From the sequence record OR496884.1: a stretch of 64,000 nucleotides of DNA. The stretch is one strand, 5' to 3'. Below the pieces are notes generated by a model. The model did not search any database, was not told the origin of the DNA, and saw only the letters and a list, made by a program, of their open reading frames with translations. Both the position numbers and the translations under genes were made by a program. Positions 25,259-36,166 of this stretch are shown here, in pieces. Position 1 is the first letter of the stretch. Every line of letters starts with the position of its first letter.

Positions 25259-25864
25259 TTATGCTTTTAAATCATATTGACTGTTTTCAGCCATTGAACT
25301 AAGTCTTTTATTTTCCTCTAAAAGTTCATTGACTATACCATGTAACAATTTATTCTCTTGCTCTGGTGTAAGAACTAACTCAGCTTGTTTCATTTTATCG
25401 GTGAGTTCTAAGTATTTATTCAGCTTCTCACAATTTGTAGGATAAACTAAATTTTGGTTAGGATTCCCGTCGTGATACTTTATACCAAATTCTTCTGTTC
25501 TTTGGTTCCATGTTGACACATTTTCTTCCGATAACATGTTTATCCAACCATCGAGTTGGATCATCGATAAACAGCTGTAAGAATTTTTAAATTCATGTTC
25601 CATTGCAAAACCAGGGACATCTAAATTTTCCGATGGGGACATGTAAAGAAAAAGATTTGATTTATCATTGGAGCAGATCATCTTCTTAATATCGGGATAC
25701 ACCACATAGTGAGTAAAATCCCTAATTTGTTTTTGATAATCATTTAATTTTATTGTAATCAATTCAACAGTCGATGACTTACAGAGAAAAGACCCGATAT
25801 AAACATGATTTTTTAAAACAAGAATTTCTTTAACATCCATATTCATACCTTTATTATTTAGCAA
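25259..25864 (-). CDS. Hypothetical protein (accessory)
   Basis: 201-aa ORF; true start probably a slightly later ATG. Confidence 0.65.
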   Translation of the reverse strand: MLNNKGMNMDVKEILVLKNHVYIGSFLCKSSTVELITIKLNDYQKQIRDFTHYVVYPDIKKMICSNDKSNLFLYMSPSENLDVPGFAMEHEFKNSYSCLSMIQLDGWINMLSEENVSTWNQRTEEFGIKYHDGNPNQNLVYPTNCEKLNKYLELTDKMKQAELVLTPEQENKLLHGIVNELLEENKRLSSMAENSQYDLKA

Positions 25865-26429
25865 TACGGTTAATGAGACGATTCATCAACTGGTTAGTTG
25901 TTTCTACCATCTCTTCTTTAAATTGTTTAAGGATCTCTTGGACTTCTTCGTTAGTGTACGTTTCTTTATGAAGTGTCCATTTTGGAATTTCTACTGTCGT
26001 GACAATTTGATGTTCTAAAGTTATCCCGCCAGTTGGGGTAAATGATATATAGAGTTTTTGAAGAGCTGACATAATAGAGTCAAATTTAATGTTTCTTTCT
26101 ATTATTTTAAAATCTGTATTTTTAAACTCAGCTGGGTAATGAAAATCGTCAAAAGAACAAGTCCCCTTTTCCAAAATAATGCAAAGAAAATTCTTATTGC
26201 TTTTTTCACCAAAACTCACATAACACGTTTGTTGAGTTTTCATTTTGTTTATAAATGCGGTAAGGGTTTCTAATCTATTTTTAGTTTTACTGTGAGGATT
26301 TCCACCCGACTCCAAGGGATGTATACCTTTATCCCAAGTCAAATATAACGCCCCACCAGTGCTGTAAATAAACTCAGAAAAACTACCTTTACAAAATCTA
26401 TTTAAAATTACATCATTTTCCAAAGACAT
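25854..26429 (-). CDS. Hypothetical protein (accessory, behind early promoter motif)
   Basis: 191-aa ORF with AAGGA RBS. Confidence 0.7.
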   Translation of the reverse strand: MSLENDVILNRFCKGSFSEFIYSTGGALYLTWDKGIHPLESGGNPHSKTKNRLETLTAFINKMKTQQTCYVSFGEKSNKNFLCIILEKGTCSFDDFHYPAEFKNTDFKIIERNIKFDSIMSALQKLYISFTPTGGITLEHQIVTTVEIPKWTLHKETYTNEEVQEILKQFKEEMVETTNQLMNRLINRIAK

Positions 26430-26500: not shown

Positions 26501-26531
26501 AACTAGAGAGTCCCAAAAGGACTCTCTAGTT
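26501..26531. terminator. Terminator after 26552-27097
   Basis: 13-bp stem aactagagagtcc/ggactctctagtt. Confidence 0.8.
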
Positions 26532-26551: not shown

Positions 26552-27097
26552 TTAACGATATGCGTAGTTATTCAAAGTTTGTGCTGCAGCACCAGGGAAC
26601 AAATGAACAAGTTTGGCAACGTCAAAATTGGAAATGAAATGATCACGCACTTTGATGTTAGCAGAAAGCATTGTCATAAACAACATAAATTTCTTATAAC
26701 GATCAATCTCGCTAATGGGTGCCAGTTTTTCTTTTTCAATAACATACAGGGGAGCCAGCAAACTGTTTTGACCAAACGCCGCTTTGTTAGCTGCGATAGT
26801 AACAATCCAGTGGTCCAAAACTTCGTGTGCTTGATTACCATCAATCTGTAGAAGATTGACAATGTCTTTCATGAAAGACAGTTGGAAGTCGTTACGTTCT
26901 TCCTGAGAACCGTTTTTAACTTCCCCCTTGAGAAAGAGTACAAACTTATCAAAACCATTCTTATAAATAGTTGCCGGAGTAGTTGGAATTTTTTCAGTAG
27001 GGATACCTAATGCAGTATCCATACCTTCTACCTTTTTAGACTGCTCGGTAACTACATCAGAACGAACAGCAATATCTGGGGCTTTATGTGGCTTCAT
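26552..27097 (-). CDS. Hypothetical protein
   Basis: 181-aa ORF, AAGGA RBS, starts right after the upstream stop. Confidence 0.75.
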   Translation of the reverse strand: MKPHKAPDIAVRSDVVTEQSKKVEGMDTALGIPTEKIPTTPATIYKNGFDKFVLFLKGEVKNGSQEERNDFQLSFMKDIVNLLQIDGNQAHEVLDHWIVTIAANKAAFGQNSLLAPLYVIEKEKLAPISEIDRYKKFMLFMTMLSANIKVRDHFISNFDVAKLVHLFPGAAAQTLNNYAYR

Positions 27098-27607
27098 TTA
27101 CGTGTTTTCCTTTATAACTTTGTTGAGTTCTTTACTTGGATCAGGGTGTGCCATTTTGTTTTTAGCAGCACGCTGCGCCTGTTCTTTTGCTTTGCGTTTT
27201 CCTATAGCTACGCCTTCCAAAAGATCATCAATCAAATTGACAGGTGAATCCATGTAATCTTTGAGTGGAATTAAACTATCATACTCACGAAGCCCAAATG
27301 TTTCGCCAATACTTTTAACAGAAAAGATATGGAAGAAATCCTTACGTTGGTGATTATAAATCAACGCATTTGCCATAGTTTCTTTTTCATTAACCCATCC
27401 GTAAACCATGCAATAAGCACGTTGTTCGGAAAACAACGTCTCCAAACTAGAGACGTTGTCTTTTTTATAAGTATTGTGAAGTAGCTTATTGGCGGACTCT
27501 ATCCAACGCTTTCCAGAATTGACCTCGTCGGGATGGATTAAGAAAGAATTTCCTCTTGTAAAGCTCCGATCTCCCGACGGATTGCTATCAACATCCGGGC
27601 CTGGTCG
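27098..27607 (-). CDS. -1 frame extension (169 codons) probably reached by frameshifting from 27538-29148
   Basis: Frame open from 27625 to stop 27098; only a hairpin-embedded TTG (27445) and a late ATG as possible starts. Confidence 0.6.
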   Translation of the reverse strand, partial: RPGPDVDSNPSGDRSFTRGNSFLIHPDEVNSGKRWIESANKLLHNTYKKDNVSSLETLFSEQRAYCMVYGWVNEKETMANALIYNHQRKDFFHIFSVKSIGETFGLREYDSLIPLKDYMDSPVNLIDDLLEGVAIGKRKAKEQAQRAAKNKMAHPDPSKELNKVIKENT

Positions 27608-29148
27608 AAAAAATTCAAGATAGGATCAATTGGTGTAAATCCATTTCGAATTTCTTTTTGAGGATGACGTTCTTTACATTTTGGACACTCATCATCGGGT
27701 ATCCCAATAAAAGTGTAAGAGAAACGAGGAACAAGTTTCAACACCTTTGTAAGAGCAAGTGTATAGAATTCCTCATCTTCGTTAAACATATCAATCAACC
27801 CTTGGTTAAACTCACCAGGGTCTTCTGAACGAAGAATAATTTCATCTTTCTCATCAGGGTTAAGCGGGTCTGCTTTATTTGTCATTGATTTAAAATATTG
27901 CAGGTAATCGATCATACGCATAGAGCCGATCAATTCTTTTCGCTTTTCCCCAAATTCATTTGCATTGGGGAATTGAGCAGCAAGCTCACGGATTTCTTTA
28001 TTGATCAGTTCAGCAGCCCGGTCAAAACACATGAAGTATTCTGACAGATAAGGACTATCAATTTCCAGTACAATACCGCCATCATGGCTAACGACACGAG
28101 CGTCAATATCTGACAGGTCTACATCACGATAAGGGACGGTTGAAGAAAGAAGTTCTTCTCGAGTGTATTTTTTACCTGTATTGATTGTTTCCAACATTTG
28201 AACCATATAAGCTTCTGGATATCGGATATCATCAAATACAGCAAGTTCAGCAGCATCGACCAAGATGTTACGAGAATACTGACACTTATCTGCCAAACAT
28301 GTCAGACGATAAGATATCCCCTTAGGAGCACCAATTGCAAGTATGGATGTAGCAATGATATCAGCATCTTCTCGCTTAATAACAGTAAGCAGCTCTTCCG
28401 ATTCAACAATATCACTAACAGACCAATAAGTACAACGAGAGAGCACCCAATCCATGATAGTCCGAATAATCAGAGCACGCTCCAGATGTAAACTAGAAAT
28501 CCGAATACGGCCACCAAATTGGGTACGTTGGAGGGATACGGATATCTTGTTAATCAGACTAGCCAATTCCCAAGGAGTGGGAACCTTTACCCGAAGCAAA
28601 ATACGGGAGTTCATTAAAACAATAATAAACTCGTCTGCTGAACTAGACGCTTTCAAAAGACTACGACGCATTCGATCGCGAATACTTGTTTTGTTACGGT
28701 TGTTTTTAACAGGAACGGGTTCAATCAAACTCATCACTGTATTATCACGTTGGATTTGATTGCTAAAACGTTCAGGGTCAAGAAGATCCAGGTTGTCATC
28801 ACGACGAAGAGTACGTTCACCACGTTGGATAAACGTAAAGTAATTTGCCAACGTTTCTTCTAGTTCTTCTTGATCAACATTCTGGAAATGCTTTTCTTTA
28901 AGTTCAGCATATTTTACTTCAAGTGAATTTAGTATTTGATCAGGAACACCCTTTCCTTGTTCTTTGTCCATTTTCATTTGACGGAGCTGAACAAAAATAA
29001 TTGCGGTCTGCATAATAGCATCATGCTGTTCTTTTAATGAACCCAAGAACAAAGGAGTAGCAAAACCGGGATTACTTTCTCCTTCTTTAAAAGGAGTTTT
29101 ATAACCAGCACCTTTGTGCTGGCTGTTATCTTTAATTTGTTCAGACAT
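27538..29148 (-). CDS. Conserved protein, probable tail/baseplate assembly chaperone (phiKZ gp77-like, tentative)
   Basis: 536 aa with CLADKC and CPKC Cys pairs; slippery site near its 3-prime end. Confidence 0.55.
   Translation of the reverse strand: MSEQIKDNSQHKGAGYKTPFKEGESNPGFATPLFLGSLKEQHDAIMQTAIIFVQLRQMKMDKEQGKGVPDQILNSLEVKYAELKEKHFQNVDQEELEETLANYFTFIQRGERTLRRDDNLDLLDPERFSNQIQRDNTVMSLIEPVPVKNNRNKTSIRDRMRRSLLKASSSADEFIIVLMNSRILLRVKVPTPWELASLINKISVSLQRTQFGGRIRISSLHLERALIIRTIMDWVLSRCTYWSVSDIVESEELLTVIKREDADIIATSILAIGAPKGISYRLTCLADKCQYSRNILVDAAELAVFDDIRYPEAYMVQMLETINTGKKYTREELLSSTVPYRDVDLSDIDARVVSHDGGIVLEIDSPYLSEYFMCFDRAAELINKEIRELAAQFPNANEFGEKRKELIGSMRMIDYLQYFKSMTNKADPLNPDEKDEIILRSEDPGEFNQGLIDMFNEDEEFYTLALTKVLKLVPRFSYTFIGIPDDECPKCKERHPQKEIRNGFTPIDPILNFFDQARMLIAIRREIGALQEEILS
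27607..27613 (-). promoter_or_regulatory. Putative programmed -1 frameshift heptamer U_UUU_UUC
   Basis: In phase X_XXY_YYZ (AAT TTT TTC); -1 frame closed by TGA four codons upstream and open downstream; GC-rich stem-loop ~7 nt downstream. Confidence 0.6.
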
Positions 29149-29830
29149 TATCCATAAGCTCCTGTTTTACGCTTGCTTGTTCCAGTACAGTATATGCGAC
29201 AGCTTCTGTAATGGCAATTCGGGCTTCATCCATTGTTACTTCAGGATGTTCGATCATATATTCTTTTGCAGACCCTGTGACATAACTTGCAATGGCGATA
29301 CCGTGTTCGTCATCAATCTTTGAAATCTCTTCGTACAGTTCGGTTGCACGAGTTTCCAATTCACTACCGACATCAAAGACATTGATAACAAAGTTTTCTG
29401 GATCAGATTCACGAAGCGCTTTAAATGTAGAGAACGTTTTATCAATGTTCATCATTGAACGGGCGATATCTTCAATATCGATAGAAGGTTGATAATTAAT
29501 TTTATTCTGTTCACCTAGCTTAACAGCAAGAGAAACATAGCAGAACAATTTAAAGCAATCACCAATTGCTGAACGAGTAGAGTTAATCAATTCATCGGTA
29601 TTAATTTTAGAAAGTTTTTCTTTATTAACCCCGCCAGAATGTTTAATTAGAGAATCGACACGGTTATTATCAAGAGAGGTGCGAATATTCTCTAATGTTT
29701 TATTAAAGGTTTTGGACTTAACGGGTTTGACACTGACCTGATTGCGATTTGCATTTTTCTTTTTTGCTGTACTTGCAATACGACGAGCTGCACGTTTTTT
29801 ATCTGCGTTTCTTTGTGCTTTAATGGACAT
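29141..29830 (-). CDS. Hypothetical protein with basic N-terminus
   Basis: 229 aa; K/R-rich first 40 aa; GGAG RBS. Confidence 0.75.
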   Translation of the reverse strand: MSIKAQRNADKKRAARRIASTAKKKNANRNQVSVKPVKSKTFNKTLENIRTSLDNNRVDSLIKHSGGVNKEKLSKINTDELINSTRSAIGDCFKLFCYVSLAVKLGEQNKINYQPSIDIEDIARSMMNIDKTFSTFKALRESDPENFVINVFDVGSELETRATELYEEISKIDDEHGIAIASYVTGSAKEYMIEHPEVTMDEARIAITEAVAYTVLEQASVKQELMDNV

Positions 29831-33565: not shown

Positions 33566-36166
33566 TTATACAGTAACACCACTATCTATTGGTTCAAATA
33601 TTTTCATCTTTTTAGTAAAGATACCTTTTCTCTTGCGACCGTATTCAACCTGTTTTGGTTCATCGACACAAACAAAGTAAACAAAGATAGGATCAAGATC
33701 AGGCCACCATTCATCGATAGGTCTGGTTCGCCCCACCATTTGATCATTACGTTGTGAAGACGATACCGCTATTGGTGAAAATACGGCATAAAGCTTTTTA
33801 ATATCTTTACCTGTTCCGCAGCTACCTGGAGTAGTGACAACATTACGATGTTCTCGATATGCGGTAGGATTCTTTTTGTTTGTAACAGAGTTAAATACAA
33901 TGGAATCAAGTTCTGGGTAATCTTTAAGTAATCGCTTATTGAATCTTTCACAAAACTCAATAGTTGCAAAGAACCACATTGACTTTTGACCTTCCCGATA
34001 CTCATCCATGTAAAACATGTCATAAGCACCTTTGAGCATTTGATAATAACGCTCAAACACATCTGGTCTTTTTAATATTCCTTGTTCAAATTTAACATGG
34101 GAATAACCGCCAAACCCTTTTGTATTAATTCTATATTCCCATAACTTCATTCGATGAAAATAAGAAATTACACGTATATATTGGGTATATTCCGGAGGTT
34201 TTAAATAAGAGGTATGAGGGAAGATTTGTGAATAAATACCATTAATAAACTCATCGTCACCTTTTAAGGTTGCAGAGAGTATAATAGTTTTATTAACGTT
34301 ACCGTACATCAAGCTGTTGTAAACAGAATAGATTGACTCGTGAGCTTCATCAATAATTCTAGTACCAATCCCAAGATCACTATAAATTTGATCAAGTGTT
34401 GGAAGTGTTGGTTCTTCTTTGCACTTTTTCAAATAAATGTCTATTTTACTTAGCGGTAAAATAATGACCTTTGGATCACTTACACCGGATTTAACGTTTT
34501 CATGGACTTGTTGAACATTAAGAATATCCGCAACTAAAATATCTTGGGGTTTGATATTGTAAAATTCCCCCATTGCTTTAATCCAGATATCAATATATCT
34601 TGGCAGAACTGTGATGAGAATGCGATCAGCTAAAAGTTTAGCGGTGTAAAGTGCACAAAACGTATTGTGAGTGACAATGTAGTCGTCAGTTACGTAGAGG
34701 TGGTCTGGGTGGTCAATTGAGATGCATTGTGCTTCTTCATGACTTACCAATTCTACATTTGTAATGCGTAGTTTAAGTTTTTCAGAATACTGAGTTTCCT
34801 GAGGGACTCGATCTTTCTTCTTTGGAAGGGAGAAACATCTTTTTGGATTCTTTATTCTGATATAAACTCGATACGCAAGCTGACCTTTTAACTTCTCTCC
34901 TTTATGTTCGTACTTAGGAATTCTAGACGTGATTTTTGCAATCCCACCTAAACTCCAAACCAGTTCCTGAACTTGCAAAGCAAGTTTTTCAGAACTTGTG
35001 CTAAATACAGGATGTCCTACATTTTCATTACGGCTTCCACAAAGATCTGCAGAACCATCGGTATCCATTAAACCACGCAGTAATTCCCAACGCTGTTCAA
35101 TCGAACCATTCATGTATTCTTCTGGAATAGATTTTTTCAGAGAAACTGCTTGCTCTATTCCAATAGACTTCAATACACTTAACAATGAAACCTTTGATTG
35201 ATTCATTGTTATAAAGTTTTCATATGCCTTTGCAGTGTGTCTTGTTTTAACTGAAAAATCTTCTCCTAATCTTTCAGAAAGTTTATTGACTACGAATGGA
35301 TCATTATTAGTAAACGTGACTACTGTACCTGTGAATCCACCGTCACCTAGCAATGCACCTAAAGCCCAAGGATCAAGTTTAAAATCTTTATCCTCAGTGA
35401 TTTCAGCGGCGGGCAATGGAACATAAATCCTCGGCTGCGCTAATTCAAATCTTCGAATAATTTCTGAGGTGTCAATAATTTCCCAGCGTTTATGCTTTCT
35501 TTTGGAACAATCATACACTTTCCAAAGATGTTCAGCACAAACTTCGGTACTTCTACCGTCATAAAAAGTGATACGGTAAATGTCCTTTTTACCTTGAGGG
35601 AATACACCAATAACTTTACTAGATGTTCCGTCCCATGCTGTTACGTAATCACCTACTTTCATTTCACCCATGGTGCTCCAACCACCAGGGATTTTAATCT
35701 TACTATGAAGTGGTTGCGCTTTCCCGCCACCAGTCGTCATGTTGTTCACAACAAGTGGAAGTGGACCTCCCATGAAATCACAATACTCTTCTTGTGTCTC
35801 ATTACGAGGTTTAATTTTATCATTGAGAAAAGAAATATCAACTTTCTTAGCTTGTATTTTTTCTTCATCTTCAATTCTAATTCTTGAACGCTTGTACCCA
35901 CTACTTTCCATTATTCTAAGTAGTTCTTCTAACTTAGATGGATTAAATCGTAATTCTGTTTCATTGTGATTAAAGCGGGCGTAAACTTGTTTTACTTCCC
36001 ACTTAGACGTCCCGAACAATTCCCCCGGAACTTTCTGAAATCGAAAGAAGTTCCTTTTACAAAAAGGTCTTAACACTTGTCTAACGAGTTCAGGCTTGAA
36101 GTCCGTTAGGCGGACATATGTACTCGCCTTATAGACCGTCAACGTAGTTCTCATACGAAACCTCAA
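33566..36166 (-). CDS. SF2 (DEAD-like) helicase, intein-containing (phiKZ gp75-like)
   Basis: Walker A TGGGK/T, IIDEAH, LSAT, QMVGRTR; probable start ATG 36154. Confidence 0.9.
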   Translation of the reverse strand: MRFRMRTTLTVYKASTYVRLTDFKPELVRQVLRPFCKRNFFRFQKVPGELFGTSKWEVKQVYARFNHNETELRFNPSKLEELLRIMESSGYKRSRIRIEDEEKIQAKKVDISFLNDKIKPRNETQEEYCDFMGGPLPLVVNNMTTGGGKAQPLHSKIKIPGGWSTMGEMKVGDYVTAWDGTSSKVIGVFPQGKKDIYRITFYDGRSTEVCAEHLWKVYDCSKRKHKRWEIIDTSEIIRRFELAQPRIYVPLPAAEITEDKDFKLDPWALGALLGDGGFTGTVVTFTNNDPFVVNKLSERLGEDFSVKTRHTAKAYENFITMNQSKVSLLSVLKSIGIEQAVSLKKSIPEEYMNGSIEQRWELLRGLMDTDGSADLCGSRNENVGHPVFSTSSEKLALQVQELVWSLGGIAKITSRIPKYEHKGEKLKGQLAYRVYIRIKNPKRCFSLPKKKDRVPQETQYSEKLKLRITNVELVSHEEAQCISIDHPDHLYVTDDYIVTHNTFCALYTAKLLADRILITVLPRYIDIWIKAMGEFYNIKPQDILVADILNVQQVHENVKSGVSDPKVIILPLSKIDIYLKKCKEEPTLPTLDQIYSDLGIGTRIIDEAHESIYSVYNSLMYGNVNKTIILSATLKGDDEFINGIYSQIFPHTSYLKPPEYTQYIRVISYFHRMKLWEYRINTKGFGGYSHVKFEQGILKRPDVFERYYQMLKGAYDMFYMDEYREGQKSMWFFATIEFCERFNKRLLKDYPELDSIVFNSVTNKKNPTAYREHRNVVTTPGSCGTGKDIKKLYAVFSPIAVSSSQRNDQMVGRTRPIDEWWPDLDPIFVYFVCVDEPKQVEYGRKRKGIFTKKMKIFEPIDSGVTV
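34664..35719 (-). mobile_element. Class 3 intein (352 aa) with LAGLIDADG homing endonuclease
   Basis: Starts AQPL (Ala1), block B CAEHLW, block F AQCISI, ends VTHN before Thr+1; GALLGDG and RGLMDTDG motifs. Confidence 0.92.

Follow-up and report, generated by a model that had tools for sequence, protein, structure and literature searches.

A probable, family-wide −1 frameshift site near the 3′ end of core gene cg18 in phiKZ-like jumbo phages

The DNA considered here is a window of 64,000 nucleotides (nt) from the genome of Aeromonas phage AerS_266 (OR496884.1, 243.7 kb, genus Chaoshanvirus), a phiKZ-like jumbo phage; window coordinates are record coordinates minus 62,000. On its minus strand lies a gene for a protein of 536 amino acids (aa), here gene A, whose 3′ end is overlapped in the −1 frame by an open reading frame (ORF) that runs into a conserved coding region, here B, without recognizable initiation signals. 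At codon 512 of A, which begins at 27615, the codons AAT TTT TTC set T_TTT_TTC (27613-27607) in X_XXY_YYZ phase, a heptamer on which tRNAs in both the P and the A site could re-pair. The −1 frame is closed by a TGA (27628-27626), is then open for 175 codons (27625-27101) up to a TAA (27100-27098), and offers its first ATG, GTG or TTG, the TTG at 27445, only 54 codons past the heptamer. By arithmetic, a shift at the heptamer would join 514 codons of A to 169 of the −1 frame and so give a protein of 683 aa besides the 536-aa product. A reading made from the sequence alone had proposed a fusion of this kind, of a core gene to a start-less ORF; codon phase, stop codons, the 54 start-less codons and both product sizes came out the same on re-checking. 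The comparative evidence is strong, and makes a programmed −1 ribosomal frameshift at this gene throughout the phage family the probable explanation, though without the stem-loop stimulator that had been part of the proposal.

A tblastn search with gene A found homologues in 70 phage records, and passage through EL ORF047 and PhiPA3 gp074 brought in 246 more, the wider family taking in phiKZ-like phages, SPN3US, Goslar, Ea35-70, RP12 and Halocynthia phage JM-2012. With the −1 piece as query, from the first codon past the heptamer on, matches in phages of nine host genera aligned from its residue 1, and every one of them overlapped the 3′ end of an A homologue. Of the loci inspected, 72 in number and 62 after removal of duplicates, 35 came from GenBank and 37 from IMG/VR by a peptide pattern that included the Phe-Phe pair, with ten IMG/VR loci taken by patterns elsewhere; the Phe-Phe pattern fixes amino acids only and not codon choice, and the GenBank set and the second IMG/VR set were chosen independently of the site. 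The phages infect Aeromonas, Pseudomonas (EL, OBP, PhiPA3 and the phiKZ-like PA7), Erwinia, Vibrio, Klebsiella, Salmonella (SPN3US), Escherichia (Goslar), Ralstonia, Shewanella and others, with protein identity down to ~20%. In each of the 72, N_TTT_TTN stands in phase 11-27 codons ahead of the stop that ends A; the ORF downstream is in the −1 frame, which, from the heptamer or earlier, has no stop for ~150-185 codons. The conserved heptamer and open frame expected from the initial reading are thereby borne out, no orthologue among the 72 loci lacking the one or having stops in the other. The heptamers of 59 distinct loci are T_TTT_TTT (28), T_TTT_TTC (24), G_TTT_TTT (4) and, once each, T_TTT_TTA, C_TTT_TTT and G_TTT_TTC; three loci added afterwards each have T_TTT_TTT, and the heptamer is perfect in 56 of the 62.

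What is conserved may also be described as a run of six or more Ts (six in 28 loci, seven in 26, eight in 4), which would allow another origin for the same A-B protein, namely that the RNA polymerase of phage or host adds one U at the T run and part of the mRNA then encodes A and B in a single frame. Five of the six imperfect heptamers still hold six Ts, and, to judge from their annotations, these phages use unusual multisubunit RNA polymerases of their own. Against this, runs of 5-8 Ts are short for efficient slippage when set beside bacterial cases, a single locus (L067, on IMG/VR contig 3300046542_000227) has only five, in a G_TTT_TTC 40 nt upstream of the stop that ends A, and the forms met most often are heptamers of the textbook tandem-slip kind, correctly phased. 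Slippage in transcription is accordingly an unlikely source of the fusion, if one that deserves to be kept in mind.

For slippage by the ribosome instead, the choice of codons at the site is pertinent. TTT makes up 34% of the Phe codons in long ORFs of the loci. In the same loci 520 other Phe-Phe pairs provide a control (every ORF of 150 codons or more in the fetched sequence was used, and a few of these may be non-coding): 15% have TTT first, 21% come after a codon whose last base is T, and only 7 (1.3%) are slippery. In the first 49 non-redundant loci the site itself has TTT as its first Phe codon without exception (49 of 49) and T as the base before it in all but two (47 of 49). Judged by these counts, conservation of the site exceeds the keeping of two PHENYLALANINES, and because so few of the other pairs are slippery, selection is taken to act on the nucleotides themselves.

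The frame into which ribosomes would shift is equally distinctive. Within 60 codons past the heptamer the 59 non-redundant loci (given also as 49) have no stop in the −1 frame as against 259 in the +1 frame, with some in every locus, and in the overlap alone 59 loci have none in the −1 frame as against 100, spread over 46 loci, in the +1 frame; on this comparison the −1 frame is open far beyond chance. Substitution rates (simple Nei-Gojobori counts over 13 phylogenetically independent pairs) change at the heptamer. Gene A was divided at the heptamer: the three stretches that lead up to it have 0-frame synonymous differences of 0.565, 0.511 and 0.590 and the stretch past it one of 0.185, with the non-synonymous difference nearly level (0.107 past the heptamer vs 0.12-0.13 before), and a synonymous drop of this sort is the signature expected of a second reading frame starting there. 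Beyond the stop of A, the start-less linker, taken as the −1 frame from that stop to whichever canonical start comes first in the two members of a pair, has proportions of synonymous and non-synonymous differences of 0.53 and 0.25, a ratio of non-synonymous to synonymous rates (dN/dS) of ~0.33, and substitutions distributed 41/40/72 over the three codon positions (chi-square ~13 vs equal thirds, P ~0.002). By these measures it evolves as coding sequence, and in the three Chaoshanvirus phages conservation of the −1-frame protein can be seen before any of the starts is reached.

Just 5′ of the stop codon of A, 19 of 19 sequences of the Aeromonas/OBP clade have GAGGA and TCTTT without variation (window ~27540-27556, minus strand; columns 58-76 of alignment A6), and a Leu codon is always CTT in the same 19. 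The invariance of all three is consistent with dual coding. The GAGGA also resembles a Shine-Dalgarno (SD) sequence, but no start codon stands at a usable distance from it.

That resemblance is one of the points favoring a further explanation, in which B is a separate gene, read from a non-canonical start or by re-initiation, with the T run and the overlap being a Phe-Phe motif together with RNA start signals. Gene callers and annotators treat B as an ORF of its own everywhere, ATG or GTG stands at or beside the stop of A in some lineages, the conserved GAGGA of the Aeromonas/OBP clade precedes that stop by ~12 nt, and hairpins in the spacer could be regulatory. The starts assigned to B are nevertheless inconstant. 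In more than 30 GenBank records the annotated start, which may be ATG, GTG, TTG or even CTG, differs in almost every one and lies 0 to 237 nt past the upstream stop; the ATG at 27409 chosen in GenBank for AerS_266 is CTG in CF8; and canonical starts beyond the stop of A do not appear until 21 to 85 codons past the heptamer, depending on the genome. Within the window, 44 of 45 annotated genes begin with ATG, and their pairing with the anti-SD has a median of −6.0 kcal/mol and is at its weakest −3.2 kcal/mol. The candidate B starts pair more weakly than all 45 (TTG 27445, −0.9; ATG 27409, +0.4; ATG 27376, −0.9; TTG 27364, −1.5 kcal/mol), and at TTG 27436 a GGAG is only 3 nt away, both being buried in the 3′ arm of a hairpin, so that by SD-anti-SD pairing no candidate start in the window has a usable SD. 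A separate B also leaves unexplained why no locus has a stop in the −1 frame once the heptamer is reached, why the offset is −1 in 72 of 72, why slippery codons are kept against codon usage, and why synonymous constraint begins at the heptamer and not near the stop; nor does it account for a coding-like linker, with a predicted helix of the domain, upstream of all canonical starts. On balance a separately initiated B is improbable as the general case.

Frameshifting, as distinct from simple fusion, is a state that appears to have been retained. When 1.84 billion representative proteins were scanned in full with HMMER, 32 relatives of the −1 piece were found, all of 74-172 aa, and in the same set none is the C-terminus of a long protein and no in-frame A-B fusion occurs. 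Since the two-frame state is kept everywhere, it is suggested that the ratio of the two products matters. Relatives of A of ~656-686 aa were considered as natural fusions and ruled out, their length being due to an N-terminal extension, with a separate B in the −1 frame (ChrisDB, SPN3US). In the SPN3US/Machinavirus clade, A of ChrisDB and SPN3US has an N-terminal extension of ~120 aa and a length of 656-659 aa; by position, SPN3US gp39 is A and gp40 the −1-frame ORF. Coincidence or sequencing error, whether a homopolymer miscall that splits one ORF or an accidentally open frame, is hardly credible, for while homopolymer runs are error-prone in some sequencing chemistries, the same −1 offset recurs in 62 distinct genomes or metagenome contigs from many laboratories and platforms, the T runs have four different lengths, the 0-frame tail of A past the heptamer is itself conserved and closes with a conserved motif, and among the relatives found none has one long ORF.

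The programmed shift may be pictured as follows. As a ribosome arrived at T_TTT_TTC, its P and A sites would be occupied by Phe-tRNAs. Most ribosomes would read 22 more codons to give the 536-aa protein, the last 27 residues of which are predicted to form a helix. In a minority the two Phe-tRNAs would slip in tandem on U_UUU_UUY, back by one base, and 169 codons would then be read in the −1 frame. The minor 683-aa form would thus have, in place of the C-terminal helix, a linker of ~25 residues predicted to be disordered and a helical B domain of ~144 residues. B in AerS_266 has no credible start of its own and therefore would be made only within the long form, as its C-terminal module. We infer the ribosomal slip itself, its frequency and the roles of both forms.

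Several observations weigh against this. The first base of the heptamer is G or C in 6 of the 62 distinct loci, with P-site re-pairing then imperfect, and constraint on the linker is relaxed in comparison with the B core (dN/dS 0.33 vs 0.13). An independent start for B, put forward at the outset as what would speak against recoding, is nowhere usable in the window but in a few lineages does adjoin the stop of A: in RP12 an ATG overlaps the stop, and in pTD1 a GTG follows 9 nt after it. B may in these lineages be synthesized separately too; heptamer and open overlap are kept even there. Ralstonia phage RP12 (L075, 3398-3446) has a GC-rich genome and yet keeps its T_TTT_TTT run and open −1 overlap; this phage may produce B in two forms, free and fused.

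A further adverse point is that, in the folds and searches made, the site is without a conserved or unusually stable downstream structure or an upstream SD-like motif. The GC-rich stem-loop that the sequence-only reading had placed ~7 nt past the site as stimulator does not hold up: it is a 29-nt element of weak, interrupted pairing (−7.9 kcal/mol), 37 of 200 shuffles were as stable (z-score −0.8), and RNAalifold found no conserved helix past the site in 19 relatives. No stable structure was evident in the window in the 47 nt (z +0.2) or 87 nt (z −0.9) past the heptamer, and of eight phages in which the same stretch was folded, seven gave z of −0.95 to +0.5 and Goslar, with a modest hairpin, −1.9. 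No SD-like motif is seen by eye before the heptamer, and there is no Rfam match in 26900-27900. With neither a hairpin or pseudoknot at 5-9 nt nor an upstream SD-like element to stimulate it, shifting may therefore be of low efficiency. Stimulators are common at frameshift sites but not obligatory.

What does stand out is a hairpin further on, in the linker, and it too is a difficulty, being stable, partly terminator-like and within the frame that a shifted ribosome must cross. In AerS_266 it has 15 bp and a folding free energy of −25.7 kcal/mol (z −4.8, matched by none of 200 shuffles), encloses TTG 27445 as was claimed at the start, and keeps its pairing in CF8 despite different stem letters. 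In the 140 nt past the stop of A, a 40-nt window of −15 kcal/mol or lower occurs in 44% of 59 loci vs 14% of 531 control stretches from gene A, about a threefold difference, and in 39% of loci the linker beats all nine gene A controls. Perfect linker hairpins of 9-15 bp, varying in position and sequence, are present in loci L003-L016, L019, L021, L025, L034, L039, L043 and L050-L058, and several resemble terminators. They could serve in attenuation of transcription, as processing marks, or in masking of an internal SD and TTG.

Gene A is the homologue of phiKZ gp077, PhiPA3 gp074, Goslar gp081, EL ORF047 and SPN3US gp39. Orthology was traced by tblastn from the window protein to EL ORF047, from there to PhiPA3 gp074, and on to PA7 and Goslar gp081; a GenBank note equates PhiPA3 gp074 with phiKZ gp077 and EL gp047. 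In the published core genome of the Chimalliviridae, cg18 comprises Goslar gp081, phiKZ gp077 and RAY gp267, as a ‘hypothetical protein’ (PMC10299810 Table S3), and synteny with homologues of gp78, gp79 and gp80 backs the assignment of A to it; that A is a jumbo phage core gene, as first supposed, is thereby upheld. The B ORF is missing from the 68-gene core list in the same table, and was found in all 72 loci despite that absence. An identity of A with PicA/Imp1 (phiKZ gp69) was ruled out, the phiKZ orthologue being gp77; the ‘gp77’ of papers on Goslar structure, transposon sequencing (Tn-seq) and ChmC is a different gene under the numbering of other phages. The labels ‘ZipA-like cell division protein’ and ‘baseplate protein’ carried by some records had no support in profile searches.

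Direct indications of function are sparse. In phage Churi the homologue, gp256, is classed with ‘non-structural proteins’ detected at 15 min of infection (PMC11849849), and the text of a preprint on Goslar virion structure names neither gp81 nor gp82. Both observations fit an assembly factor. Cys residues 284, 289, 488 and 491 of A (C-x4-C and C-P-x-C) are invariant in homologues down to ~17% identity and probably form a metal-binding site. The AlphaFold model of A has a mean predicted local distance difference test score (pLDDT) of 72 and a predicted template modelling score of 0.62, with the C-terminal helix at 509-535; that of the −1 piece, from 33 relatives, has a mean pLDDT of 80, with residues 1-25, which correspond to the overlap, disordered (pLDDT <50), and the helical domain of B at 26-169. 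The first helix of that domain, 26-48 (pLDDT 86-95), lies wholly upstream of TTG 27445 and ATG 27409. The alignments under these models are shallow, at 13 and 34 sequences. A profile search with the A alignment in a set of 5.8 billion proteins retrieved 13; sequence profiles of Pfam, NCBIfam and PDB gave no match for A, B or their neighbors, no PDB fold matched A or B, and in PHROGs both fall only in families without assigned function.

The sequence-only reading had likened the pair to the G/GT tail or baseplate chaperones, and the likeness stands as one of design and not of family, size or gene position. The tail chaperones of lambda (G/GT) and P2 (E/E+E′), with the tail-gene frameshift conserved in dsDNA phages, likewise have an in-phase heptamer near the 3′ end of the upstream ORF and a start-less downstream ORF in the −1 frame; their products share an N-terminus, the long form adding a C-terminal module, and the arrangement is kept across very divergent phages, just as neither a fused nor a fully split state was seen here. 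As far as gene reading goes, overlapping ORFs that a −1 shift would join, the G/GT-type architecture, are present. The differences are that A has 536 aa vs ~100-150 aa for the upstream tail-chaperone protein, that the A/B pair is beside homologues of the virion RNA polymerase β′ subunit and of gp79 and gp78 rather than between tube or tail and tape-measure genes, and that the Churi homologue was seen as early as 15 min into infection (PMC11849849). A has no tail-chaperone match in Pfam or PHROG, and fold matches bearing the name ‘tail assembly chaperone’ are insignificant (probability 0.41 or less). By analogy in design, then, the pair is comparable to G/GT, and as far as tested it is not a member of that family.

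Two other recoded systems offer partial parallels. IS3 orfA/orfAB transposases likewise rely on a −1 slip at a homopolymer-type heptamer, with a downstream ORF that lacks an efficient start and with short and fused products both functional; the proteins and their biology are unrelated to A and B. Clear stimulation, by an SD-like element before the site, a structure after it or both, is usual for IS3; at the A/B site no such element was found. In Escherichia coli dnaX the tau and gamma forms of one protein are made in a fixed ratio through a tandem −1 slip, but there the shifted form is the shorter one and flanking stimulators are strong, whereas the shifted A/B form would be the longer by a whole domain.

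A baseplate connection for A does find an echo in predicted structure. A Foldseek comparison of the A model with BFVD, a comparison of a prediction with predictions whose names are automatic, returned its own jumbo phage homologues and, more weakly, eight models named for T4-type hub proteins (‘baseplate hub assembly protein, T4-like’, ‘baseplate hub assembly chaperone’, ‘baseplate hub subunit’), with expectation (E) values of 4e-5 to 9e-3 and template modelling scores relative to the target of 0.41-0.59; for the T4-type-named matches at E 4e-5 to 1e-3 the Foldseek probability is 1.0 and this score 0.5-0.6. The matched models have 226-285 aa, A being about twice that length, and no T4-type hub assembly family was found by sequence for 14 homologues (Pfam, PHROG and NCBIfam, E up to 0.1-1). 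The fold-level likeness of A to T4-type hub assembly proteins is a lead, and the only support that model comparison, or any other, lends to the baseplate-chaperone idea. As a working guess, drawn by analogy, A may act in assembly or scaffolding without being part of the virion, with one more binding module on its minor long form and the ratio set by slip rate. Setting a ratio by slip rate is the design principle of lambda-like and P2-like tail-chaperone pairs.

The features of the locus are collected in Table 1. The operon on the minus strand consists, in order, of a 229-aa gene, gene A, a small coding sequence (CDS), a 181-aa gene and a terminator-like hairpin, and the plus strand carries, in divergent orientation, homologues of two phiKZ proteins, gp79 and the virion RNA polymerase β′ subunit gp80. 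The neighbors of A and B include homologues of gp78, gp79 and the β′ subunit, the 181-aa ORF, which is syntenic in most loci whose annotation was inspected, an HNH endonuclease and a ribonuclease. GenBank annotates the HNH homing endonuclease at 25854-26429 (minus strand) and an 862-aa ‘DOD-type homing endonuclease’ at 33566-36154 (minus strand), which may be an intein- or intron-bearing gene. The window has no tRNA genes.

Table 1. Features of the gene A/B locus of AerS_266, in window coordinates
Feature	Coordinates	Strand	Basis or remark
Gene A, 536 aa, 0-frame product	27538..29148	−	ORF and translation; GenBank CDS WNV45855.1; phrog_4585 at 1e-73
Slippery heptamer T_TTT_TTC, codons 512-514 (Asn, Phe, Phe)	27607..27613	−	X_XXY_YYZ phase
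TGA closing the −1 frame just 5′ of the heptamer	27626..27628	−	Frame check
−1-frame reading after a shift, 169 codons and TAA	27098..27607	−	ORF; tblastn
Overlap zone of two frames: predicted C-terminal helix of A (0 frame) and linker (−1 frame)	27538..27606	−	Synonymous drop, stops, models
Start-less linker, stop of A to first ATG/GTG/TTG of the −1 frame	27446..27537	−	dN/dS, helix model
15-bp hairpin in the linker	27433..27459	−	Folding; holds TTG 27445, TTG 27436 and the only SD-like GGAG
Conserved core of the B domain as annotated, WNV45854.1, 103 aa	27098..27409	−	phrog_19747; ATG start not conserved
Weak stem-loop put forward as stimulator	27572..27600	−	Not above chance, not conserved
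Upstream gene of the operon, 229 aa (phiKZ gp078 position)	29141..29830	−	Its stop overlaps the start of A
Downstream 181-aa gene, phrog_14374	26552..27097	−	Begins directly after the stop of the −1 ORF
Strong terminator-like hairpin with T run, ending the operon	26501..26531	−	Folding

An earlier description of frameshifting in cg18 was not found in the full-text literature on jumbo phage, phiKZ, giant phage, SPN3US and 201phi2-1, most subscription-journal papers being outside the search, and a 2025 review of nucleus-forming phages has neither ‘frameshift’ nor ‘recoding’ in its text; the sequence-only reading likewise named no such report for phiKZ-like phages. What the comparative evidence points to is a real, apparently undescribed, −1 recoding site common to the family. 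A fuller proposal, which goes well beyond the shift itself and is more doubtful than likely to hold in all its parts, would be that nucleus-forming jumbo phages as a whole, and relatives such as Halocynthia phage JM-2012, make from cg18 a third, unannotated protein, a minor isoform fixed by frameshifting that carries B, a counterpart of the G/GT principle built on a structurally different chaperone resembling those of T4-type hub assembly, with the linker hairpin adding a second layer of control by termination or processing.

The Chimalliviridae are studied intensively, both because of the phage nucleus and with a view to therapy, and most of their 68 core genes are without assigned function. 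If the frameshift is genuine, cg18 (phiKZ gp77) would be mis-annotated in every deposited genome examined, and the small downstream ORF would be the C-terminal domain of an isoform of ~680 aa and not a separate gene. Gene counts and core-genome lists would change, as would the reading of proteomic, knock-out and Tn-seq results at the locus, and the family, for which no recoding was found reported, would have a deeply conserved instance. It would also give a handle on the function of this core gene, in the form of two isoforms at a fixed ratio, a predicted four-Cys metal site and a predicted fold like that of hub assembly proteins.

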